Source: Paraphysomonas bandaiensis (Eukaryota; Protista; Chrysophyceae). From it: a DNA stretch of 14,116 nt. Every line of letters starts with the position of its first letter. Positions within the stretch are counted from its first letter, which is position 1. A program made the translations under genes and the position numbers. The notes beneath the pieces were generated by a model, which worked only from the letters and a program-made list of their open reading frames with translations, was not told the origin of the DNA and searched no databases. Shown one piece after another: positions 1 to 14,116 of the stretch. The stretch lies in the NCBI GenBank assembly GCA_965644295.1, contig CBFFRP010000084.1, positions 1 through 14,116 of the forward strand. The letters run 5' to 3'.

Positions 1-491
1 CGGTATACATATACAGCTGTATGTGCGAATACAGTACAGTACAAGATGAGGCAGCAGTACAGTGCAATCGTATAGTATCTATATACGATCTTCACACTAG
101 CTATAGAGGCTGTAGAGAATTGCTTAGTATAGCATACAGAGGGCGATGAAGACGGTGAAGATATGCTAGGTAGCATTGAGAAGGAAGTAAAGGTGAAATG
201 GGTTGGTATTTTAAGTGAATGTTTCATATGAGGAGTAAGAGGACTGTATTAAGTATTAAGTTAAGTACAGTCACTGTAGTGGTTGTGCTGTAGGTGTTGT
301 GTATATGCACAGGGATTGTACAGCTACAGGAGACAACCGAATACTCAGCGACAGAATGTATGCATGTATTGCCCCATATTGACAGCGTAACTAATCACTG
401 CGTGCGGCCCTCTAGTGGGTGCGGCTGAGTGCTACAACTACACTATGGTAATCATCAATGTGGCAATAATCAAGGAACTGTGAGAACTACC

Positions 492-1190
492 TCAGAAAAA
501 ATGAGGACATCTTCGGACCCGAAGTAAATAAATTTCTTGTTCTGTTAGACCAGTTAATTTTGGATTCCGCCTCTGAATTTGTTTATCAATTTCTGCCTTA
601 GTTTTTTGCCAACACCTCATTGTTTCATGGCCATCTGGTAGCATCTTCTTTTCCAGTATGTACTGATCAACAGTTTCGAGTGCTTCGGGTACACATGGAC
701 TGAATCTAGATTACATTCATTTCCTGTATGATGATTTCTGCTTTCCTCATCAACCACGTCGTCATGCGCTTAGCCCAATTGGGCACTCCGAATTGTTGAT
801 CAAAGATCAGTAACCACTTCATGCCACTTTTGTTATAACTATCACTCGCTACTATGTTCGAATTTGACATTTGACATATACCCCTTCAATAAAGTCGGAC
901 TCGCATCTTTTCGTGGTGCTCTGGGGGATAAGTACTGGAAACATTTCTCCAGAAAAATTACGAGTCAGCAGATAATCTTCTGCCCATACATAGCCATATT
1001 CTTGTGTGGGACAATGGACACTATATAAGTGTCACTTGTGTAGACATTTTTGGGCCTTGACGAATAAACAGGCATCCAAGAATAGACCCACCTCAAGGGC
1101 ATCCGGGGTATTGGGCTGCCTGCTGAAGTCAAGCATCCGTAGCGTTAAATAGTGGGATGCCATAGTTAAGCACTGACTCTTGAACTCCTA
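492..1190 (-). pseudogene. Possible degraded coding remnant of unknown family
   Basis: More balanced base composition than the AT-rich DNA at 1200-1900. Protein-like stretches occur in changing frames (FLEKCFQYLSPRAPRKDASPTLLKGYMSN, GMKWLLIFDQQFGVPNWAKRMTTWLMRKAE, PEALETVDQYILEKKMLPDGHETMRCWQKTKAEIDKQIQRRNPKL..RVRRCPHFF*). A 7-bp tandem duplication (862-875) separates the first two. No homology was recognised. Confidence 0.3.
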
Positions 1191-1216
1191 TAGCTAATAA
1201 TAAGACATTCACTACT
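1138..1216 (+). repeat. Dispersed direct repeat, copy A (pairs with 12502-12578)
   Basis: Manual alignment gives 66 of 79 columns identical (11 substitutions, 2 single-base gaps), same orientation. Confidence 0.85.
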
Positions 1217-1973
1217 GCATATCAGGATAAATCCTTCCAAGAAAGAATTCACTTTACAACATATATATTTATTTCATAAGTTTCACCTATGATGTGAACA
1301 AAAAGTAGTCCTATAATGTTTAATTATTAGTAATATATCAATATAGAATATAGCATTTGTTGTCTTCTCTTTTGAAATGGTATGATATTAACTCTTATAA
1401 ACATTTACTTAAACACCATAAAATCTCCTCGATTTTCCAATTCCCACACAATTGCAATATGTTTATCTCTTAGACAAACACGCACCATAAATTGAAATTA
1501 TATCCTTTGTAACTATATTCATGCTGTTTCATCTATTGCACATAAAAAATCATATCGTACAGCGGACTTAACATTGAACAGACAAAAATTCCAGTTATGA
1601 TGAGAAGTTCTTAGGTCTTATCCTTTTAATCTCATCATACGGTCACTATATACCATGCTCTATGATATACATTTTGTACTGTAAGTGGTACCATTCTCAT
1701 TGGAATCTTAATGACCACTTTAGTATACAGTGGAAATCTAAACATACTTTAAGCTACCAAAGAATTATTACAAGAATGTGCAGTTTATGATATATATAAC
1801 GGTATAACGCTCTTCTAAAGCATCAGGTGGGGGCTAGAAGTTTACTACATAGCAGCATAGTACTCTCTGGGCATCTGGTCACATCGAGTAAGATTCAAAG
1901 TTATAAGGCAACGGGATATTAATTGACCACCACAACTTGTACTATACAGAACTTAGCTATTAGTTTTGTTTAT

Positions 1974-3066
1974 CTATTTGCTACTTGATGTGTCGCTGCT
2001 TAAGAATAACGAATCGATATCGTCGTTAAATTGTCGAAGTTGAGCTTCCAATTCTCCCATATTCTTTTCCAGATTCAACCCATCGTTCAGGACCTACTCA
2101 AATTCCGACAATACACATAATAATACAAGGCCATCGGCTTAAAAAGAACAATAAAATACCTCTTGGTCATCTCCTTGAGCGTTTGACTCCTCACGCGCCT
2201 GTGACATTATTTCATTTGTTCGCTCTCATCAACAAAAGAATACGTAGAGGGTTCAATTATGTCAATATAAAATGTACGATCTACTACGTAGCCAAATCAA
2301 TTTCATAGCCTATATTGCACAGAGATATCACGCACAGGTACCCATTCCATTATTCTATTGTGACAGTCCGACGCATACAGTACCTGTAATTCAATTTTTT
2401 TGAACTTCGTTGTGTACTCACTCTCGTTTCGTCGCTTCTCCTGTTTTTCATCGTCTTCTTCATCCTGGTTGCTGCGAGGGGAACGCAAAAGGGTCTCAAG
2501 TGACTGCAGCTACATGATGTGTCACATATTTACAATTGAGGTTACGTCTACCCTGCTGCAGAAGTACCTTTGCTGTATTAGCAGTGTGTATTCTCGCTGC
2601 AACATTCGCTTCATCTTCAGTGTAAGGGTACTCAAAAGTTGGAATATCCTCAGGAAGCTCATCGCACTCATATTGGCTTCTATTCTCTTTCCACCTCTTC
2701 AAGTCTTCAAGTGCAGAGTCCATGTCACTGAGAAACATGCGATGCTCTAAGTCATCTCCTCCCTGCAGCAGAAACTATAACATATATACTACATCGTAAA
2801 CATCACCATACCATGTTAATTTTATCTTGTAATATATCTTCAATTAAGCTTGAATCATCAAGATAACCTTTACTTTCAGTACATGAGCTGTCTAGAGCCT
2901 GTGCTCCCACTAATCTTAAACGTGGTGTAGAAACAAACATTCCATCTGCTTCAAACTCATCATTTTTATCATCTCCATTCCAATCATCACTCCTTTCCGC
3001 TTCATCTTCAAATTCTTTTTCAATATCACTATTATTTTGATGTATATCTTCATTGTTTTGACTCAT
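1974..3066 (-). CDS. Spliced hypothetical protein, acidic and predicted helical/coiled-coil; likely exons 3066-2812, 2762-2568, 2509-2384, one uncertain segment, about 2198-2160, 2093-1974
   Basis: Three consecutive - strand ORFs join in frame through phase-0 GT-AG introns 2811-2763 (49 nt) and 2567-2510 (58 nt). A CAG|GTACTG donor lies at 2383. Intron 2159-2094 (66 nt) links AREESNAQGDDQE to VLNDGLNLEKNMGELEAQLRQFNDDIDSLFLSSDTSSSK*. The structure between 2383 and 2199 is ambiguous, and no domain was recognised. Confidence 0.7.
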
Positions 3067-3863
3067 TCTAACACTACTTTACTATTAAGTTACTAGAGAT
3101 GAGAACTATGAAATAACTGGATGGTAAGTTAATTATAATGATGAAACGATGATATGTAATGTGTCCCGCATGATAAGGGAATGGAATTAATCACTCTTAG
3201 TTTAGATGGAGTGATATCTAGTTATATATATGTCGTTAATACTTAAGAGGAAACTGTGAGTTGATATCTTGTACACACACATATAGAGCAGTCAGTACAT
3301 CAACTGTACATACAGTATTTTCCCGTTATTTTGTATATTTTGTTTACTTTAAAGCCTATAAAACTTATATTTTCTTACTTTTCCATAATTTTCTACTCCA
3401 AAAGCCATAATTCTTATCATTTCTAGATTCAAAATCGAAATATTAGATGCAAAAATCAAAGTACGTACGATATATCCTCAATTCACATTTCTTACGAATT
3501 TCCCAGAGTTTGTATGAACTGAAAATATCCATTCAAGATACTATCAAAAGTGTTGTATGCCTCGAATTCACTGACACTCATATGGTCTTGAAGGAATAAA
3601 AAGAAGTTCAAGATGAACCCATACTTCCGTCATCGCCAATATACACTTTCATCATATGATACTACGGAAATTTTGCAAGTAGGTAAATATACATAGAAAT
3701 CAACTGAAATTTTCAAGTTTAGGTTGTCATAATTACCATAATTAACTGATAGATCGGATATCTTCTATAAATTTATTACCTATCAAGTAGTACATTCATA
3801 GTGGGATATATGCCACTTTTATGAGATAGATGATGATGATTTAATTGATTTTATTGGGATACA
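3067..3863. promoter_or_regulatory. AT-rich intergenic region between divergent genes; candidate bidirectional promoter and 5' UTRs
   Basis: 797 bp separate the ATG at 3066 (-) from the ATG at 3864 (+). The region has no ORFs. The call is positional; no specific element was identified. Confidence 0.45.
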
Positions 3864-6800
3864 ATGACTGATGAAGGGAAGACAAGTATCTATGAAGGGG
3901 CAGATGTATGGAGTCTCTCAGATGACACAGAAGCTGTATGGAAGAAAGCAATAGTTAGAGATATTGGTGATATAGGAGATCTTGGAGGGAAAATAGAAGT
4001 TCATGTGGATTATTTGAATGGTGAAAGGGATATAATTAAGACCAGATATGAGGAGGATGAGGTCGATGAATTTCAGCATATTAAACCAAGAAGCTGTTGT
4101 CAATTTGATCAGATACCAGGATTAGATTTATCAGCATTACCAGTTATTAATGAACCGGAGATTGTGGAGTGTATGCAGCAATGTTTTAATGATAATATTC
4201 GTTATTTGTCTGTTGGTCCGGTGTTGATATCAATTAATCGACATGAGGTTATTCCTACTGTTGTCAACGAAAAGATGTACAAATCTTACTTTTTGATTGA
4301 CAAAGCACAACAAGACATGGTGAATCCTGTGCGTGCTGATGTGATAAACCTGGCCTATAGAAAGTACCTTAAGTTACATCCCGCCAACACTCCACTTCAG
4401 AGTGGGGGTAATCAGGCGGTCATAATGCTAGGGGAATCTGGAGCTGGAAAGTCCCGCTGTGCGCGGGAGCTCTGTAACCACATTGCCTTCATTGCGAATA
4501 AGCTTCGACGGCGCTCATCAACCGATACCTCATTTACTCCTGATATAAAGTTCTTCGATCAAGTCAATACCATTTTGGAGTCATTTGGTCACGCACAGAC
4601 GGTGAAAAACTCAAGCTCGTCAAGATTCTCCAAAGCGGTGAAGTTAACTTTCGATGAGAACACAGGGGCAATTAAAGGAGTCTTATTCCGCTGTTTTCAC
4701 TTGGAAATAGGTCGTGCGACCACTCAGTATCCTGGGGAATCAAATTACAACGTCTTTTTCGATGTATTCGACGACATATACTTCGCGGCCCAGGCGATGA
4801 GTAAGTACGGTATCGACAACCTTACGACTTTTAGATACGCTATGCACCGCCCTAAGACGGTGTTCCGTCCGGGTAAGTCGAGTTACAAGGATTTAGCTGC
4901 TGCATTGGATACGATCGCGAAAGTTCCCAAGGTGAAGCAGAATGCGTCAATTTTTGCTGTTTTAGCAGGAATTTTGCATCTTGGACAAATTGAGCTTGAG
5001 GAAGTAGATAACTATGGTGACGTGTCTACAGTTCTTTCTTCTGATCCGGCTAGTGTAGATCATATGAATAGAGTTTTTAAGTTACTGGGCATTTCACTGG
5101 AGGCACTTCTTGCTGTGATAGCGAAAAGGAATCTCAACTTCGCAGGAAACATCGTGGAGAAGAACTTAGACCTTGCAGAGTCCTTAGCAGCACGTGATAG
5201 CTTTGCGAGCCAGATGTACTCCGCACTGTTCCGATGGGTGATAAGCAAAATGAATTCGGGGATTGCGGAGTTGTTCAACTCTACAGATGAAGCCAGTGGT
5301 GGAGGTAGTCCTAGGAAGTCGGAAACCTCGTTCTCTGACAATGGAGATGCATTTGACAGTCCAGAATCATCTTTAGATAAGAACCAGTTCAGTATCTATG
5401 ACTTTACTGGGTTCGAATGCTTCGACAAGAATTCTCTTGAGCAGTTATGTGTCAACTACGCCAATGAGCGCCTGTATCAGTTCCTTAACCAAATGGTTTT
5501 TGTGCTTGACAAGGAGCTCTTCTACTCAGAGAATGTTAATGTAGGAGCCCTCACGTTCATAGACAATGCTTTAACTATACGCCTTATCGACAACAAATCA
5601 AATGGCATCTTTACAATTTGCGATGACCAATTGAAACTGAAATCTTCCACCTCTGATGAAAAGTTGGCGAGTATATTATACGCGCAGCACTCAAATAACA
5701 AAATGTTCATCGCTGGTCGAAATGAGCATAAGAACTGTCAATTTTTGATTCGGCACTACGTGTCGTTCGTTCGTTATGATGTAAATGGGTTTACAAATAG
5801 TAACAAAGTTGAGCCGGCTCAGGAAATACTGGAGTGTCTTCGATCGTCCACTATATCCTTTGTCCAGGAGGAGTTAGCCACATTTTGTGACATTCGGTCC
5901 TTGTTTAACCAGGCCCACTCCTCCGGTCTTGTTCCCCCTCCTTCCCTTGACCTCTCACCACCAAGAGCATCGTTTGGAGCTGGAAAGCAATCAAGTTCAC
6001 GAAATTTACTTGGTGGGCACTCCCGATCTCCCAGTTTACGGAATGTGATGCAAGAACGATCGCCGAGCCTACGTGGACACTCCTTCGAGCTAGCAGCGAA
6101 TGGCAACTCTCCTGTAACCGAGAATCGCCGTGATTCATTTTCACGGTCCAGGTCTGCTCACCCATCATTGGTACAGGATGGCTCCAGTCCATTTTCTGGC
6201 CGTCCCGGTCTTGGTCCCCGTTCTTCATCCATAATAAACAGGGGCGGGGCGAAAGTGTGCACCTTAACCTCTATGTTCTCGCTACAGATGGCAGAGGTTC
6301 TCGCAGAAGCAAAAGCTGCGGATACATCGTTTATGCTATGTATCAAACCGAATGACTCCCAGAACCCCACTCTTTTTGACCAGCGTATTGTGCTGCGGCA
6401 ACTACACCCTTTTGGGTGCGGAAGTATTTTGACATTTTACAAAAGGACATACCCCTATCGTATGGACCCAATATCATGGGTTAATCGGTACAGCCCCATC
6501 GCCGCGCTCGCTAAAAAGTCCAATCAGTTGACGTCTCAGTTTTTAACAGCTTTATGGGATTATAGGTCACATGGACTCGAGAGTCCATCGATAAAAGAGT
6601 GGAACGAGGTTGCCGGCCAACTGGTGCAAATATTACCGTATTTACCAGAACTCAAATCACTCTGTGCAAACGTGAAGGGTGTACAACAAAACGTGGGATA
6701 CACCATTAGCGATATCTGCACAGGCATTCGTGTAGGTGACAGTCATGTCATGATGACAGCAGTGTCGTACTATTACCTTAATGCTGCGCAACAGATGGCG
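3864..6800 (+). other. Myosin head: N-terminal SH3-like subdomain plus motor domain (divergent)
   Basis: GADVW..DTEAVWKKAIV (SH3-like); DLSALPVINEPEI..GPVLISIN; P-loop GESGAGKS at 4431-4454; LESFGHAQTVKNSSSSRFSK (switch I, 4608-4634); ILHLG; ARDSFASQMYSALFRWVI; switch II DFTGFE at 5400-5417 followed by NSLEQLCVNYANERL; FLIRHY..VRYD..GF; CIKPND; YPYR. The end coordinate is approximate. Confidence 0.95.
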
Positions 6801-9800
6801 GTCAAATTGATCGGCTGTCGTATTATGCATTTCTATCGAAGTCTCAGAGATAGTGCCCTACGCGAAGCTGCTATACGTATGCAGTGTCTGATTCGTTGCT
6901 ACATTGCCAAAGCACGCGTTCGGGATGCGAGAAAAAAATGGTATACTGTCATTAAAGTGCAGTCGATTGTTCGTGGCTTTCTCTCAAGGTTGGATAAATC
7001 GCGGGAGTCCCGAAGAGCGCGTAAAGAGTTCACCTCGAAAGTTATCAAAATTCAGGCAGTGTGGCGAGGTAGTTATATCAGGCACCGACTGGCTGTTATT
7101 CGTGATAGCGAGGCAGTTTATGGGAAGGCTGCACCTCTCCATTCATTAGGTTCGTTTGGAGCGTCTCGTACAGATAGCCATCGTGAAGATGTAGGTAATG
7201 TTGAGATCGAGGAGGTGTCAATGTCCGAGGAGGAGTCGATAAAGGAGCAAAGTGAAGAAGATGATTTCTCTCTAGAGCCTATTCAACTCAATGGCAATGC
7301 CTCGAATGATAAAGACACTAGGGATACAGGTGAAGAGAAAGTAGATTCTGTCAGTACCCAACACTACCACCATGAAACCTCGACTGAAAGTGTGACATCT
7401 CCTCCACAAGATGATACCACGGTGAGAGAGTCCACCACAATTGTTTCTCAGTACTCGTTTGGATCGGACACGAGAAGGTCATCATTCAACCCCCTATCTG
7501 TACCTGTATCTCGGACCCACCAAGCGAAGATCAGAGAACTACAGGCGACTATTGAAGCTCTGGAGGCGGAGAACTCACGTCTGAAGAGGAAACTGAAAGC
7601 AGAAGCTTCACCCGGTGAGGATGAAAAGCAGCAGGATGAGGACGAACACTATGTTGGACAGGATAAGGGGCCATACAGGAAAATGATATCGAATAGACAG
7701 TCCACCGTTGGGGAGTTCACTCCTCAAAGTGTATACGGCGGGGAATATGCTAGCCCACATACCATACAAAAGGTTGAAACGAGAAGACCAGAGTATGAGA
7801 TGTACATATCGCGGACATTAAAAGCGCTTGAAGATGATATCTCGTATCTGTTAGAACGTAAGTGTGTTTCGCATTCGCGGTGTGTTTTAAAAATGGTTCA
7901 TTTAGCGACCCCATTTTATAAGTTTGGAAGAAACGGAAGTGTACGGAAGACCCTGGTAATGATAACACCCGATTTTCAGTATTTGCAATGGAAGCCAAAG
8001 AATGTACTTCTCAAGTCGAGTAAGGACTGCAAAGGTGGTTTTAAATCGCTTCTCATTATTGTATACCTCACTAACTTGACATGTATATGTGCAGTTGATT
8101 TACGGCTAGTATGGAGACTGGTTGCTGGACAGTCTACGCCCCCTTTTGATGCATACAAGGGTGTGTCACATGGTCCAATGCCTCCTTCACGCTCTTTCTC
8201 ATTGGTTTATGGTTTCCGCTCGCTTGATTTGTGTGCCGTTGACGATGAAACCTATGAAGACTGGTTCGCCGGACTGCGATATATATTGCAGCTTATTAAT
8301 GGCGACCTGCAAGAAGCTGGAATCGACCGCCAGCTACTGCGTAAAAAATGGAATTTCTTGGATACGAAGCACCATGGTTTCTTGTCTCGTAGGGAAGTAA
8401 TTCAGCTAGTGTCCAATTTAGGTATCCAGTTTGACCGGGCAAGTTTTACGTCTGCGCTTTTACGTAGCACTATCGGCAATTCAACTCACGATGAAATAAC
8501 ATTCTCGCAATTTGATAGCCTGGTTTACCAGTTGCGAAGACGGTGAGTTTTTATAGAGTTGTGCACGTTGAATCTAATTCGTTCCTGTAGTCCGGATTTA
8601 GAGATCATATGGAGTAAGATACTGATCGGATACGATTTCTCACGTGATATCTTTCCTCTTCACGTGGATGGCGAGTTTGATACCGCCTTGCTTCATGAGG
8701 TGATTGGTATTCCGACGTTCAAACAGTTTTGGAAACTTTCCCAGGGTAGAGTGTTGACAAATGACGAAGCTCGCAAGATGATAGAGGAGGGTATGGGAGA
8801 AATGTATTCTGAAGACTTCCCTGTTTTATCATATAATGGGTTTATGAATATTATGACTAGTCATAAGAATGACGGGTTCGATCCTGTGCAGTCCGTGCCA
8901 TCTGCAAAAGATATGTCTCACCCGCTCCAGCACTACTATATTTCTACATCTGAAGGACTGACAGGAGACGTCCCCTACCATCAGGTGGATGATGATTCTT
9001 TGCTAGACGATCAACTACCAAACTGTTATGCGACTGCTATCGAGCAGGGATGTCGGGCTCTTGAACTGCGGTTGTTTGAGGACCGAATAAATCCCCGCGG
9101 AGAACAAACAGATTTGTACGTTGGGTCTAGCCGTGGTAGAGAAAGAGTTACTTTCAAAGGTTTGTCCTATGGTATTCACATGTTTTGTTGTGATATAGTT
9201 TATCAGATACCATTCTGTTTATTCAGCGGGTTGCCTTTGCGTACACTCAGTACCCATTGATTTTGATGATTGAAGTGTCTTGTGGAATCGCGCAACAGAA
9301 GCGAGCAGCTAGATTGCTCAAGAAGGTGTTTGGTGATGCGATATTCACTCCTGCTGAAGTTCAAAGCCAACTTCTACCATCACCCAACGAATTGAGGAAT
9401 AGGGTCATAATGTTTCTGACTCACCGTAAAAAAGATATTCAAACCGCCTATCGAGTGGACAATTCAGATATCGCTGCTGCATTATCGCCCTATGAATCGT
9501 TCGCCGACAATGGAAACAACCTGACCACCTCATCAGCTCCTTATGATGGGGAGTCTGAAGAGAAGGTCACAGAGTATGACTCCGAGAAAGAGTTCGCACT
9601 CAATTCGAAACTCAATACTGTGGAAGAAAACTCTCAAGGTAGCCCTGATCCGCGCAACTACGGTATTGTGGATGTTGAGTCATCCCTGCGCTCTGACTAC
9701 AAGAATCAAAGCGGTGTGGACGACAATGCTCGCGGTATTCATCCCAATTTAATGCGTTTACTACATTATTCCCATGGCATGCGTGTCGGTTGTCATCGTC

Positions 9801-11983
9801 TTCGAGACATGCTCGCTCGAATCGCTGAGTATCCTGATGCTGAAGAATCACTTACCAAATTTAATATGAAAAAGTTCTGGTATGTTTCGTTTTCTCCGTT
9901 TATATTCTTCTAATTATTTTGCAGTTTTATATATATGGATTCTAATACGAAGAAGTTTGGTTCATACGGTAGCATGGTTACTGCATGGGATTGTGGAATA
10001 TCATTTCTATCTCTATGTCACCGGTATCCATCTTTGGGTACAAAGATCAATCATGGCCGATTCAGGATGAATGGTGGCTGCGGATACGTACTGAAGCCCA
10101 TAAGACTTCGCACTCCGAGAGAACATCTGCCGTCAATGCCATATATATTGACCTTGCATGTTATCAGTGGCCGGGAGCTTCCCGTGTTTTCTTCGAAGAA
10201 GTCTAACATGACACAAGTTCACGAAACTCCTACCAAGATGATGTCCAATCCGCTCCTGCACAGTAAATCTAGACCTTTTGATTCAGAGGATGGAAAGTTT
10301 AGCGATGACGAAAGCCACCCACTACGTAACGTACGTGAAGCTGAGGTAGGATAAGTAATCGTGAGGGAGTATCCTATTGTAACATTACGTAACAGCTTGG
10401 GTCACACGGTCGTCACCACAAAGCCAAAAGTAAAGGATTCTACGTTGCCCTTGACCTCAACGGAACGCCCTGCGAGGAGGTTCAGCAAAAGACGAGGTGC
10501 ATTAAGAAGCATGGAAGAAATCCTTTTTGGAATGAGGTATAACAGTGACTCACATCCTGGCCAGCCTAATTTTTGTATGCAGGTTTTTTCTTTTGCATTG
10601 AAAGATACAACTCAGGGACAGCTAACGTTGAGGATATTTTCACATGACGAGTGCACTGCTTTTGTATCTATACCGTTATCATGCCTTCGTCAGGGATATA
10701 GAAATCTGACTCTATTCGAAGAACCAGAAGATAACAATTTTGTCATCCGAAAGCTTCCGCTGTCTGGACTTTTTGTCCGAGTGAAATTTGACACTGCTGC
10801 TGACTTTAACACCATTCAACAGGCCGACCTTCCTGCCACTCACACGGCGATTGAAAACCTTAAGGTTTTAGAGGATTGCCAGCGGTCAGATATGCCTGAA
10901 GTGGATGTAGCACATCGTGGACCACAACGAACGCCGCTGAAAGATCTTGAGGCGCCAGATTCTGTAGATCCTAGAGAGAGCTCTCCAAGGGGCCGGTCCT
11001 CGTCTCAGAAAGATGTGCGAGATATGTCAGGAGAGAAGAAAAAGGACTACTCATCCCGAGGACAATTGAGTTTTGATTCTGCTCCAGGCCTGACGAGTGG
11101 AACCAACCTGTCCCCTGAACGGAGTGATAAGCGCGTCCACCGCTCTTCTTCTCGCCACCGAGATAGAGAGCATGACCGTCACCGTAGCTCCAGTCGCGAT
11201 TTACATAGGCGAAGCAGTAGTCACCATGACGACGATCGTCGCCACAGGCGCTCTAGCCGAGATCTTCACCGTAGGAGTAGCAGCGGTCACCACCGTAGCA
11301 GTCGGGACTTGCATAGACGCAGCAGTAGTGGAGTACATGATCATCGCAGCAGTCGAGATTTGCATAGAAGGAGCAGCAGCGGTCATCACCGTCATCACCG
11401 GAGTTCTAGTCAAGACTTACATCGGCGTAGTAGTCATGATGAGTACAGAAGAAGCAGCAGCCATCGGGATGATTACGACAGAGATCGAGATCGGAGGCGT
11501 TCATCTGTGCACCGGCAAGAAAGCTCATCTTCTCGCCATCACCGAAGTAGTCGACGCAACAATGTTAGACGATACGATGATCGGTACCGACGCGTAAGTA
11601 GTTTGCAATCCGTGGATGAGAATGAGATGGAAGAGATAATTGAAACGATAGCGAACTCTCAGAAGCAGTCAGCTGTCACACAAAGTGGTGAAAATATTCA
11701 CCCCCCTGATGAGGAAGATTTGCCTCATTTCCAAGAAGAAGATACAGCGGAGTTCGAAAATGAGGATGAAAACGAGAGGCTTCCCAGTTATTCTTCTGCG
11801 GTAAACATGAAGCAAATGTACCTAGAAGAACTCCAGGAGACCACTCATAAGTCTGAAGCTGAGGACAATGGCGATATGTCACCGGCCAATCGAATTATTA
11901 AGGATGTGATATACGAAAGTGACGAACAAGTCGAAAATGCGGAAGTAGATGATGATTATGAAACGTGGAGATCGCCGGTGTAA
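3864..11983 (+). CDS. Myosin motor / PI-phospholipase C-like fusion protein, about 2607 aa; predicted exons 3864-8034, 8095-8542, 8591-9159, 9207-9879, 9925-10345, 10396-10536, 10583-11983
   Basis: Five consecutive + strand ORFs join through six GT-AG introns of 45-60 nt. The spliced length is 7824 nt (2608 codons including stop), and every junction keeps the frame. Most junctions restore a PLC motif: KDCK-VDLRLV, RRR-PDLEII, VTFK-DTILFIQRVAFAYTQYPLIL, KKF-CFIY, NPFWNE-VFSF. Myosin motifs (GESGAGKS, SSRF, DFTGFE, CIKPN) lie in exon 1. Confidence 0.93.
6867..7092 (+). other. Three IQ (calmodulin/light-chain binding) motifs, myosin neck
   Basis: AAIRMQCLIRCYIAK, TVIKVQSIVRGFLSR and KVIKIQAVWRGSYIR match IQxxxRGxxxR/K (the first has C at the G position). 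Confidence 0.9.
7518..7604 (+). other. Short coiled coil within the low-complexity linker between neck and PLC module
   Basis: HQAKIRELQATIEALEAENSRLKRKLKAE shows heptad-spaced I/L residues. Confidence 0.75.
7884..8290 (+). other. PLC-type PH domain (interrupted by intron 8035-8094)
   Basis: FYKFGRNGSVRKTLVMITPDFQYLQW, VDLRLVWRLVAGQSTPPF, SFSLVY..RSLDLCA...YEDWFAGLRYI. These resemble the PLC PH consensus I..I..IR.G..T, FSI.Y, LDL.A and W..GL..L. Confidence 0.9.
8035..8094 (+). other. Spliceosomal intron 1 (60 nt, in-frame, no stop codon)
   Basis: AAG|GTGGTT donor, CACTAAC branch site at 8069-8075, TGCAG acceptor. Removal deletes a 20-aa hydrophobic insert from the PH domain. Confidence 0.85.
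8334..8880 (+). other. PLC-type EF-hand array
   Basis: LLRKKWNFLDTKHHGFLSRREVIQLVSNL; ITFSQFDSLVYQLRRRPDLEII after splicing (the PLC R-P-E/D-L/I signature); FKQFWKLSQG; LSYNGFMNIMTSHKNDGFDP (compare LS.DGF..YL.S..N..F.P preceding the X domain). Confidence 0.85.
8543..8590 (+). other. Spliceosomal intron 2 (48 nt)
   Basis: GTGAGT donor (contains the apparent TGA stop of the 1560-aa ORF), CTAAT branch at 8574-8578, CCTGTAG acceptor. The frame is preserved. Confidence 0.93.
8910..9420 (+). other. PI-PLC X domain, catalytically degenerate
   Basis: DMSHPLQHYYISTS, LLDDQL, YATAIEQGCRALEL, FKDTI..I.RVAF..TQYPLILMIEVSC...QQKRAARLLKKVFGD, LPSPNELRNRVI. These follow the X-box consensus in order. Confidence 0.93.
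9160..9206 (+). other. Spliceosomal intron 3 (47 nt)
   Basis: AAG|GTTTGT donor and TTTATCAG acceptor. It resolves the frame change between ORFs 8559 and 9257 and restores FKD..I...AF...YP.IL. Confidence 0.92.
9737..10099 (+). other. PI-PLC Y domain, degenerate
   Basis: IHPNLMRLLHY, LTKFNMKKFCFIY, AWDCGISFLSL, INHGRFRMNGGCGYVLKP. The last is a near-canonical Y-box end (N.G.F..NG.CGYVLKP). Confidence 0.93.
9880..9924 (+). other. Spliceosomal intron 4 (45 nt)
   Basis: GTATGT donor, TTCTAAT branch at 9908-9914, TTTTGCAG acceptor. It is T-rich and removes an in-frame TAA. Confidence 0.93.
10346..10395 (+). other. Spliceosomal intron 5 (50 nt)
   Basis: GAG|GTAGGA donor and AACAG acceptor. It removes the TAA at 10352-10354 and enters the frame encoding the C2 core. 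Confidence 0.85.
10537..10582 (+). other. Spliceosomal intron 6 (46 nt)
   Basis: GAG|GTATAA donor, CCTAAT branch at 10565-10570, TGCAG acceptor. It joins NPFWNE to VFSF. Confidence 0.92.
11189..11434 (+). repeat. Coding tandem repeat, 5 x SS[R/Q]DLHRRSS, in an Arg/Ser/His-rich tail
   Basis: Five near-identical peptide copies separated by short His-rich spacers in the last exon. The surrounding sequence (about 11130-11600) is R/S/H/D low complexity and is followed by an acidic C-terminus. Confidence 0.92.
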
Positions 11984-12501
11984 TTGGCTATCTTCATGGT
12001 AGTGCCATATAAAATTCCGCGTATTTTTTGAGGATAACTCATTCATATTTACTGACGCTGGAATAATATGTAGTTGTAGATTAGTCACGTGAAATCAGTT
12101 GTTGTATATGCAACATATTAACACATTGTTGTAATTGTTTTTGCGATGGGTATGTATTGAGTTCATGAGCTCAATTTTATATATGAGTGTATGCATTGTA
12201 CTCACGTTGCAGTTAATTGAAATTATTGATGAAGCTGGACAATCGTGTAGCGCGGTAACGCCCTCTCAATATAGTAAGAAGTAGCGTTAATAAGGAGTAT
12301 GCATGTTTCTTCAATAATTAGGTGCATTTTATGAATCAGGCCACACAAGAAATTGACTAAAAGATATAGGATCGTGCCTATCAAAGATCGTTTTGATTGG
12401 TAGTTGAGAGAATACATGTCAGGTATATCTTGTTTGCTCACTGCGCTTGCTTTGAGCGAAAGTGGTTGCACCTTGGTGCTTGTGGTGACACAAGCAGCTT
12501 T

Positions 12502-12578
12502 CGTAGCGTTAAGTAGTAGGGTGTCAGAGCTAAGTACTGACTCTTAAACGGCTATTGCTAATATAAGACATCACTACT
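12502..12578 (+). repeat. Dispersed direct repeat, copy B (pairs with 1138-1216)
   Basis: cgtagcgttaagtagtagggtgtcagagctaagtactgactcttaaacggctattgctaatataagacatcactact aligns to copy A at about 84% identity. Confidence 0.85.
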
Positions 12579-13167
12579 AATTATACTAATTGATTACTGT
12601 GTGAGTTCAAGTTCAGTTACTCAAGTTATTTTACTATCTTAATATGTTGTATGTTGCCACCCCCGTATAGCGTATAGGGGAGGTTGAAGAGGTTGGCTGT
12701 CATTGAAGTGAGAGCTTGGCTGGATAGTATACAGTATACAGCTGTTTACTGCACTATACAGTTATACAGTTGCCCCCCCGAGATATAGCACATAGCACTG
12801 ATTCTACCACCCGCCTACCCGGGAACCAATGTAGTTGACATATAGATCACGCGCAGATTCTGTTGCCGCCCCACCCGTGTTCACCTTTGCTAAGATTACG
12901 CGGGATTTCTCAAAACTATGCATTATTTTTATATGTAATTCGCACAGATTCTAGTAGAACCATGTGTACCTTCCTATTACGTAACAAAGATTACACGAAG
13001 CTTCTCGTGACCATGCACGGCTCAGTATACTAAGTCTAGTGTGGCATTGGCCGCCCCCTCTCTTCCCCTAGAATGGGCGGAGTTTCTCGTATTCCCATAA
13101 AGGCTATGAAAGTATAGTGTGATCTAGCAAGAACTTGCTTGGTGCCGACACACAAAGAATACTCTGA

Positions 13168-13810
13168 GATCGACGGCCGCATCGCACGAGCCCCCTGCTC
13201 ACGGATGTCCAATCCCTCCGCAGTCAACGGACGCTGGAGGCATACACTGCCATCAGAGACCAACGCTACGGTCACAATCCCGACCGGGCACCTGGGTATT
13301 GGACGGACAGTGGGACACTACTTCCGCGCAAACTGGCACAAGCAGATAGTGGTCCCTCAAAGGATAAAGATAGCTCCTACCTACGCCAGCGAGTACTCAA
13401 TGCAGCATTGACATGGGACAAATCTTTCAGCATAGGGAGAAACCGGGCTAAAACCAAACACGGACTCGACCTGGCCAAAGCCGCATGTTCTGACTGCGGA
13501 TTTCGGCTAGACTCACTCAAGCACATGTGTCTAGACTGTACAAATGACGCCATCACGCAGATAAGAGAGTCTGCATTTCACAGCCACAAAAACGCGCTTC
13601 AAGAATTACTGAGAAATCCGGTCCTACCCCACTGGACCACCACCGCACTACAGCGGCTCTCCAGCAGGGCCTGGAACCCCTCCGTTTCACAGGTGGAGAG
13701 ATTTTGGACAGGTACCATCACCACTGCACAACTCGAGACGGTTTTTGGAGATCACATCCATGAGTCCCTGACACCCCAAGGACTGCGCAACATTGAATCA
13801 GCTTGCTTCT
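13168..13810 (+). mobile_element. Probable truncated non-LTR retrotransposon (LINE-like) ORF fragment with a C-terminal CCHC zinc knuckle
   Basis: The frame of ORF 13408 is open from 13168 (after TGA 13165-13167) to 13851. CSDCGFRLDSLKHMCLDC at 13486-13539 is C-x2-C-x8-H-x4-C with the D/E-S/T-x2-H signature found after RT in non-LTR elements. The segment is visibly C/GC-rich against AT-rich flanks, with an abrupt edge near 13810. No RT or endonuclease motif is present. Confidence 0.55.
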
Positions 13811-14116
13811 ACGGGTATCTGTTAGCTGCTATAAACACATATATACTTTAGTATTGTTACAATCATATGACTGTATATATGAGTATATTCACAGTCAGAG
13901 TATATATCATTTATATAATCACCTCAATAATGAAATGAATCTCTGAGCTTCTCAATTATGTGGATATTGAATTTACGTAATGATTATGAGAATCTCAAAA
14001 CGTTTGTCAGGCAACAAGTATTTTGAATTTATTACTATGCATTAATAGGGGTTGTTAACAATGGACATTTCACTGAAGTTAACTTTGCTCTACGCGTAAA
14101 CCGTAACCTTACTGTT

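Follow-up and report, generated by a model that had tools for sequence, protein, structure and literature searches.

A myosin gene of Paraphysomonas bandaiensis with a predicted phospholipase C-like pseudoenzyme behind its motor

Myosins in which motor and neck are followed by an enzymatic or signalling module include class III (kinase), class IX (RhoGAP) and class XVII/36 (chitin synthase), and lipid-binding tails are found in class I (TH1/PH-like) and class X (PH domains). Among stramenopiles, class XXX myosins have PH or PX tails (PMC3942036). A different kind of link between a phospholipase C (PLC) scaffold and a motor is described for animal PRIP/PLCL, which has the layout of PLC-delta, lacks PLC activity, serves as an adaptor for phosphatidylinositol 4,5-bisphosphate (PI(4,5)P2) and inositol 1,4,5-trisphosphate (IP3) and influences KIF5B vesicle transport (PMC4058080, PMC6726632, PMC5390332). 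Here we analyzed a myosin gene of the chrysophyte Paraphysomonas bandaiensis located on contig CBFFRP010000084.1 (C84) of assembly GCA_965644295.1, the window being the whole 14,116-nt stretch of this contig. The encoded protein consists, in this order, of a motor, three IQ motifs, a short coiled coil, the PH, EF-hand, X, Y and C2 domains of a PLC and an Arg/Ser/His-rich tail.

Like class III, IX and XVII/36 myosins, which are lineage-specific inventions, the protein has a motor and neck followed by a large borrowed module. By contrast to these classes, the borrowed enzyme is here predicted to be catalytically dead. With class I, X and XXX myosins it shares a PH-type domain in the tail, likely a membrane anchor; those myosins have isolated PH or PX domains, whereas here a whole PLC core is present with EF hands, TIM barrel and C2 domain. 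Domain order and fold are those of canonical phosphoinositide-specific PLCs (PI-PLCs; delta, zeta and gamma), from which the module differs by an identity of 33% or less, by the loss of catalytic residues and by long disordered inserts in the X-Y linker and a C2 loop. The PH-EF-X-Y-C2 layout is common to PRIP/PLCL, which is a stand-alone animal protein, whereas the putative pseudoenzyme described here, in which the loss of catalytic residues is judged by sequence, follows a myosin motor in one polypeptide.

The gene was found to extend over 3864-11983 of the plus strand in eight exons, with a coding sequence of 7,776 nt (2,591 codons plus a stop at 11981-11983) and a predicted product of approximately 2,590 amino acids. 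All or part of the segment 6000-12000 was contained in 20 public runs, four of which (X1, X4, X5 and X8) were aligned to 6001-12000. By this approach, contigs of X1 (8,172 nt) and X4 (6,205 nt) were each found to be unbroken over 6001-12000 with seven introns removed, and X5 and X8, which are on record as RNA metatranscriptomes, displayed four junctions apiece and five between the two. All seven removed segments were of the GT..AG type and 45-60 nt in length. Since the introns are removed in X1 and X4, both contigs derive from processed transcripts. Exon-by-exon translation revealed a reading frame that was open over all seven splice junctions with no internal stop. Taken together, these results revealed that one spliced mRNA covers the motor and the PLC-like module. 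The X1 contig reaches 2,247 nt upstream of 6001 and 269 nt beyond 12000; if 3754-6000 is free of introns, its length equals a 5' untranslated region (UTR) of 110 nt, the coding sequence and a 3' UTR of 286 nt. The start Met aligned to Met1 of P0001, one of the environmental relatives presented below.

A preliminary description of this locus, made from the DNA letters and a list of open reading frames (ORFs), had proposed that one stop-free frame (3864-8546, plus strand, 1,560 codons) runs from the motor to the EF hands, that short canonical introns extend it through X, Y and C2, and that the ORF track conceals the gene by splitting it into five pieces. The transcript contigs, which cross the region of about 6000-9000 for which a spanning product had been suggested as a check, agree with the extension by short introns and with the five pieces, which are joined by splicing with the frame open throughout. 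The stop-free frame itself is real, but two in-frame introns inside it had been missed. Introns 1 and 2 are stop-free multiples of three within the long ORF, and an ORF-based reading through them lengthens the PH domain by 36 spurious residues; the stop at 8544-8546 that ends this ORF is inside intron 3. When the window protein was compared to relatives P0001 and P0002, the only window-specific insertions of intron length were of 16 and 20 residues, matching introns 1 and 2. The variable linker that follows the IQ motifs has two insertions of 9 residues, both within the stretch covered unbroken by the transcript contigs.

The motor matched Myosin_head (PF00063) over three stretches with 330.7 bits and an E-value of 2e-98. 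Its ATPase motifs are near consensus, with a P-loop of the form GESGxGKS, switch I of the form SSR-F-x-K, in which Ser replaces the usual Gly, and switch II of the form DxxGFE. The features by which the myosin superfamily is recognized (motor match, ATPase motifs and IQ neck) were all found, and the motor is apparently competent. The three IQ motifs and coiled coil noted in the preliminary description were likewise recovered, the former by Pfam and pattern search and the latter by weak Pfam matches and heptads. A Ser/Pro/Arg-rich insert of approximately 130-150 residues (about 5930-6300), which interrupts the motor before the CIKPN helix and is probably in actin-binding loop 2, was common to the whole subfamily that comprises the window protein, its paralogue on contig C218 and P0001-P0005.

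To describe the module behind this motor, the window protein was searched exon by exon, and the uninterrupted relatives P0001 and P0003 served as proxies for the whole protein. In the window, Pfam searches detected PI-PLC-X in two parts (8913-9080 and 9197-9412), and 9977-10100 was matched by the final part of PI-PLC-Y. In P0003, PH_12, PI-PLC-X, PI-PLC-Y and C2 were all above the Pfam cut-offs within residues 1040-1970, and this region was collinear with PLC-gamma1 through PH, EF hands, X, Y and C2 (E 2e-29, phmmer against PDB sequences). An AlphaFold model of the P0003 module had a mean predicted local distance difference test (pLDDT) score of 77.6 and a predicted template modelling (pTM) score of 0.73, with disorder only in the X-Y linker and the C2 loop insert. 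By Foldseek, the model matched PLC gamma2, beta, zeta and delta1 with E-values of 1e-34 to 1e-27, and it reached a target TM-score of 0.77-0.80 with the PLC-delta1 core; further matches were to the PH domain of PLC-delta1 and to C2 domains on their own. A collinear PH-EF-X-Y-C2 core is thus present in P0003, and in the window exons X and Y were found and PH, EF and C2 were weak. The module is derived from a PI-PLC of the stramenopile type.

The catalytic centre was examined with residue numbers of PLC-delta1, which were checked against human PLC-gamma2 (His327) and rat PLC-gamma1 (His335, His380). The catalytic pair His311/His356 corresponds to His335/His380 in gamma1 and His327/His372 in gamma2. 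His311 is replaced by Glu in the window protein and by Asp in P0003, His356 is replaced by Val, and Asn312 and Asp343 are replaced in both proteins by Gly and Arg, respectively. Among the contacts to the substrate phosphates, Arg549 of the Y domain is Phe in the window protein and Tyr in P0003, and in P0003 Lys438 is Ile and Lys440 is Arg. Retained are Glu341 (window protein and P0003), Glu390 and, in P0003, Tyr551. By a single alignment, His311, His356, Asn312 and Asp343 were missing in 9 of 9 myosin-linked X domains and intact in 15 of 15 canonical PLCs, all of which retain the SSHNTY, ELDxW and xHG motifs. Across the members, His311 is changed to Glu, Asp or Pro, Asn312 to Gly or Ser, Asp343 to Arg or His and the Y-domain Arg to Tyr or Phe; His356 is Val, Met or Ala or is unaligned. 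Two of the four active-site calcium ligands (Asn312 and Asp343) are lost, and in most members Glu341 and Glu390 are retained. The X domains of the myosin-linked proteins scored 56-83 bits compared to 180-216 bits for canonical PLCs. Two canonical PLC genes with intact catalytic motifs, both among the 15 compared, are present in the same genome (contigs C308 and C331), and the EF region that flanks them resembles that of the window protein. Judged by these residues, the module is predicted to be a PLC-like pseudoenzyme incapable of canonical catalysis, and with the catalytic centre gone in every member, the motor would be unable to deliver canonical PLC activity. The term "complete phospholipase C", used for the module in the preliminary description, holds for the domain layout but not for the catalytic centre.

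The same architecture is present in environmental relatives. A query with the PH-EF region retrieved five proteins of 1,724-2,260 amino acids (P0001-P0005), all five with Myosin_head and PI-PLC-X and most with PI-PLC-Y, and a second search added P0161, which also has Myosin_head and PI-PLC-X, for a total of six relatives. All are from ENA, JGI or Logan environmental data of other marine samples, and by cluster look-up no NCBI or UniRef accession, taxon or informative name was found for the family members. P0001 is encoded by one uninterrupted ORF of 6,138 nt on a 23-kb metagenome contig and P0003 by one uninterrupted ORF of 6,783 nt; thus, the fusion is independent of any splicing model. In an exhaustive HMMER scan of 1.84 billion representatives, the family was at 38-78% identity, followed by a gap and then by canonical PLCs at 33% or less. 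Eight other long proteins that bear a PLC (P0024, P0058, P0063, P0070, P0121, P0129, P0135 and P0145) were rejected, as they have no myosin head.

Within the genome itself (62.6 Mb in 669 contigs), four of the six PI-PLC-X loci were found to follow a same-strand Myosin_head at a distance of a few kb, i.e., the window gene and loci on contigs C218, C188 and C255. At C188 and C255, PH-like sequence is present between motor and X. Transcript support is for the window locus, and the other three are known from genomic sequence. The C188 motor is much more canonical (579 bits). The C218 gene and the window gene are old paralogues, and over the first ORF, which extends from the motor to the start of PH, they have 73% amino acid identity. 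When the window gene was compared to C218 in six segments, nonsynonymous divergence (dN) was 0.04-0.23 in all six; synonymous divergence (dS) was saturated in four of the six, and the remaining two had dS values of 1.5 and 2.7 and thus a dN/dS of 0.04-0.08. The best-conserved segment was exon 3, which encodes the C-terminal half of PH and the first EF-hand pair, at 93% amino acid identity compared to 81% for the motor. The PLC-like module is under strong purifying selection.

Phylogenetic trees were built for the X domain and for the motor. In the X-domain tree, all myosin-linked modules were on one side of a branch with a Shimodaira-Hasegawa-like approximate likelihood ratio test (SH-aLRT) value of 91, at which long branches meet. 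In the motor tree, which was built without named class references, the window protein, C218, P0001 and P0004 grouped with a support of 100, and the placement of C188 and C255 was not resolved. An approximately unbiased (AU) test did not reject a single clade (p 0.29), which is no proof of one; a single origin of the fusion is compatible with these data. Since the EF region is like that of the canonical PLCs of this genome and the X domains stand apart from all canonical PLCs compared, the catalytic residues were probably lost independently of PRIP, the X-domain tree being one that contains no PRIP sequence.

A combination of myosin and PLC was found in no paper and no named protein record, which is to be read as "not found" and not as "proven new". 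Neither Sebe-Pedros 2014, Kollmar and Muhlhausen 2017, Odronitz and Kollmar 2007 nor the 2024 diatom myosin paper mentions PLC, phospholipase or PI-PLC in its main text. PLC terms are likewise lacking in the supplements of Sebe-Pedros 2014 and Kollmar 2017, the latter with a list of domain abbreviations that includes neither PLC nor C2, and nothing relevant to myosin with PI-PLC or phospholipase C was returned by a full-text literature search, outside of which are many subscription papers. The preliminary description was aware of no described myosin-PLC class, in line with these myosin surveys and searches. The diatom myosin classes that have been named are 29, 47, 51, 52 and 53 (Kollmar and Muhlhausen), and, according to a 2024 study (PMC11420354), no diatom myosin had been functionally characterized before it. 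Tiny introns, in-frame or of 45-60 nt, hide genes of this type from ORF-based and prokaryote-style gene calls, which may explain the lack of a named protein record with this architecture.

We consider it probable that the gene encodes an expressed myosin in which a PLC-derived pseudoenzyme serves as a membrane- or cargo-binding tail, with animal PRIP/PLCL as the nearest functional parallel. In such a protein, the short coiled coil would mediate dimerization, the IQ motifs would bind calmodulin-like light chains, and the PH-EF part together with C2 would attach the motor to a membrane or to a partner. A membrane with phosphoinositides, or else the bound partner, could thereby be tethered or moved along actin. 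As several residues that held phosphates in the former active site have been lost, any lipid binding would be expected not from the barrel but from C2 and from PH, the first strands of which keep a basic cluster. The possible tethering to phosphoinositide membranes put forward in the preliminary description remains plausible. A broader proposal, that these genes form an undescribed multi-paralogue myosin class of single origin with a pseudoenzyme tail that acts as a phosphoinositide- or calcium-responsive membrane adaptor and forms a physical link from actin to cortical or organelle membranes, is offered tentatively and may well prove too wide.

Myosin tails decide the cargo of the motor, and in this gene the place of the tail has been taken by an entire signalling enzyme. 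It may represent a natural case of an enzyme turned adaptor, with catalysis apparently lost, strong selection to keep the module, four copies in the genome and occurrence in several ocean metatranscriptomes. By its architecture, the protein may link actin to phosphoinositide membranes directly. If this is true, it would correspond, in covalent form, to the partnership between PRIP and a motor in animals and would give a handle on processes of membrane and actin.

Several points weigh against the tail reading. PH, EF and C2 were sub-threshold by Pfam in the window's own split exons. The contacts for the 4- and 5-phosphates are partly lost (Lys438 replaced, Y-domain Arg changed to Tyr or Phe), and thus the dead pocket may not bind PI(4,5)P2 or IP3 at all. 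The function of the tail is one that we infer from its domains. On the side of expression, the transcript alignment covers 6001-12000, with 3754-6000 outside it, and the RNA type of X1 and X4 is only a guess. An additional internal transcription start that gives rise to a stand-alone PLC-like protein may also exist, as this is compatible with the contigs.

Other explanations of the locus were weighed on the same evidence. Were the tail an active PLC, which is the preliminary interpretation in its stronger form, the motor would carry a working phosphoinositide phosphodiesterase along actin and generate IP3 and diacylglycerol locally. The full domain order and fold and the retention of Glu341 and Glu390 in most members fit this idea, and the change of Asp343 to Arg loosely recalls the bacterial PI-PLCs, in which an Arg is in the place of the calcium. 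It is nevertheless very unlikely, as all nine myosin-linked proteins have lost both His residues together with Asn312, Asp343 and the Arg of the Y domain, all of which the 15 canonical PLCs keep, and as the X-domain scores of the two groups are far apart. PRIP binds phosphatases and Atg8-family proteins. A dead module that acts mainly as a protein-protein scaffold or autoinhibitory regulator of the motor, and not as a lipid anchor, would have its parallel in PRIP, a PLC-shaped pseudoenzyme adaptor that modulates KIF5B-driven transport (PMC4058080). The partial loss of substrate-phosphate contacts points in the same direction, as do conserved C-terminal short linear motifs, including one of LPSY type, that are common with P0003. 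By contrast, the basic cluster in the first PH strands and the C2 domain are both kept, and we regard the scaffold explanation as unlikely, though clearly less so than an active enzyme.

The five pieces of the ORF track and the overlap of the window contig with the end of another contig might be taken to indicate an artefact, whether two adjacent genes, an assembly chimera or read-through. Against this, the frame is continuous over the seven spliced junctions, DNA-type runs contain all sampled words of 6000-12000, three more loci of the same order are present in the genome, and relatives from other samples are uninterrupted from the motor to Y or C2. The region 7100-7900, where an assembly chimera had been the concern in the preliminary description, is crossed by the transcript contigs and has its counterpart in the uninterrupted ORFs of relatives. 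An artefact is thus hardly credible. Least credible of all is a decaying pseudogene with a drifting PLC part: catalytic residues are lost as such decay would predict, but there are no stops or frameshifts, the gene was detected in four data sets of RNA type, comparison to the old paralogue gave a dN far lower than dS, and the same substitutions are conserved across species.

Table 1. Features of the window gene and the three further loci with a myosin head and PI-PLC-X in the genome. Positions are those of the window unless a contig is named.
Feature	Position	Strand	Basis
Putative 5' UTR	3754..3863	+	X1 contig upstream extension; assumes 3754-6000 intron-free
Exon 1: N-terminal extension, motor, 3 IQ, Ser/acidic linker, short coiled coil, PH start	3864..7857	+	
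Myosin head	4125..6521	+	Pfam PF00063, 330 bits
P-loop	4431-4454	+	motif search
Switch I	4608-4634	+	motif search
Switch II	5400-5417	+	motif search
Three IQ motifs	6879-6911, 6957-6989, 7050-7082	+	Pfam IQ, pattern search
Short leucine-zipper-like coiled coil	7527..7661	+	weak bZIP, TSC22, ZapB-type Pfam matches; heptad-like sequence
Intron 1, 48 nt, in frame, GT..AG	7858..7905	+	X1, X4 junction; insertion compared to P0001/P0002
Exon 2: PH N-terminal half	7906..8032	+	transcripts; homology to P0003 PH
Intron 2, 60 nt, in frame, GT..AG	8033..8092	+	transcript junction; insertion compared to P0001/P0002
Exon 3: PH C-terminal half and first EF-hand pair	8093..8541	+	transcripts, homology
Intron 3, 48 nt, holds ORF-ending stop	8542..8589	+	X1, X4, X5 junction
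Exon 4: second EF-hand pair and X N-terminal half, degenerate catalytic motif	8590..9157	+	
Intron 4, 47 nt	9158..9204	+	X1, X4, X5, X8 junction
Exon 5: X C-terminal half, X-Y linker, Y start	9205..9878	+	
Intron 5, 45 nt	9879..9923	+	X1, X4, X5, X8 junction
Exon 6: Y C-terminal half, first C2 strand, start of C2 insert	9924..10343	+	
Intron 6, 50 nt	10344..10393	+	X1, X4, X8 junction
Exon 7: middle strands of C2	10394..10534	+	weak Pfam C2 match; homology to P0003 C2
Intron 7, 46 nt	10535..10580	+	X1, X4, X5, X8 junction
Exon 8: C2 end, Arg/Ser/His-rich repetitive tail, acidic C-terminus, stop	10581..11983	+	
Putative 3' UTR	11984..12269	+	X1 contig extension past 12000
L013: myosin head, IQ, PH-like, PI-PLC-X, PI-PLC-Y; catalytic motifs dead	C188:10574-16687	one strand	
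L014: myosin head, IQ, PH-like, PI-PLC-X, PI-PLC-Y; catalytic motifs dead	C255:171848-177487	one strand	
L015: myosin head, IQ, PH-like, PI-PLC-X, PI-PLC-Y; catalytic motifs dead	C218:153121-161130	one strand	

The end of the protein was also inspected. Exon 8 (466 amino acids) has no Pfam domain. An Arg/Ser/His-rich repetitive stretch at approximately 11150-11560 is composed of repeated units of the SRDLHRRSSS type, and Tandem Repeats Finder detected within it only a two-copy match of 24 nt (11254-11302); this stretch could be a phosphorylation-rich or disordered spacer. At the C-terminus (approximately 11780-11980), the short motifs LPSY(S/N)SAVN and a terminal W(R)SP(P)V are common with the distant relative P0003. 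The former resembles an LPxY motif and could bind WW domains.

Outside of the gene, no ORF with a Pfam match was found in 1-3750 and 12270-14116 of the window; GC content is 31-34% around 2500-4000, and the upstream part is AT-rich. Positions 1-5919 of the window match the final 5.9 kb of contig C36 (C36:136132-142049) at 99.98% with one gap. C84 thus overlaps and continues C36, which indicates assembly redundancy and places the upstream neighbour genes on C36. Genome-wide, 101 Myosin_head matches were detected on about 40 loci, with near-identical pairs (C150/C19 and C284/C255a), and part of the excess of myosin loci may be due to haplotigs; model diatoms have been reported with 10-11 myosins (PMC11420354). 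Several silicon-transporter genes are also carried by the genome. Within the transcript alignment, single-base differences from the window at 7075 (A>G), 9029 (T>C) and 11606 (C>G) were common to X4 (organism B) and the metatranscriptome X5 and absent from X1, probably as a result of strain or allele variation.

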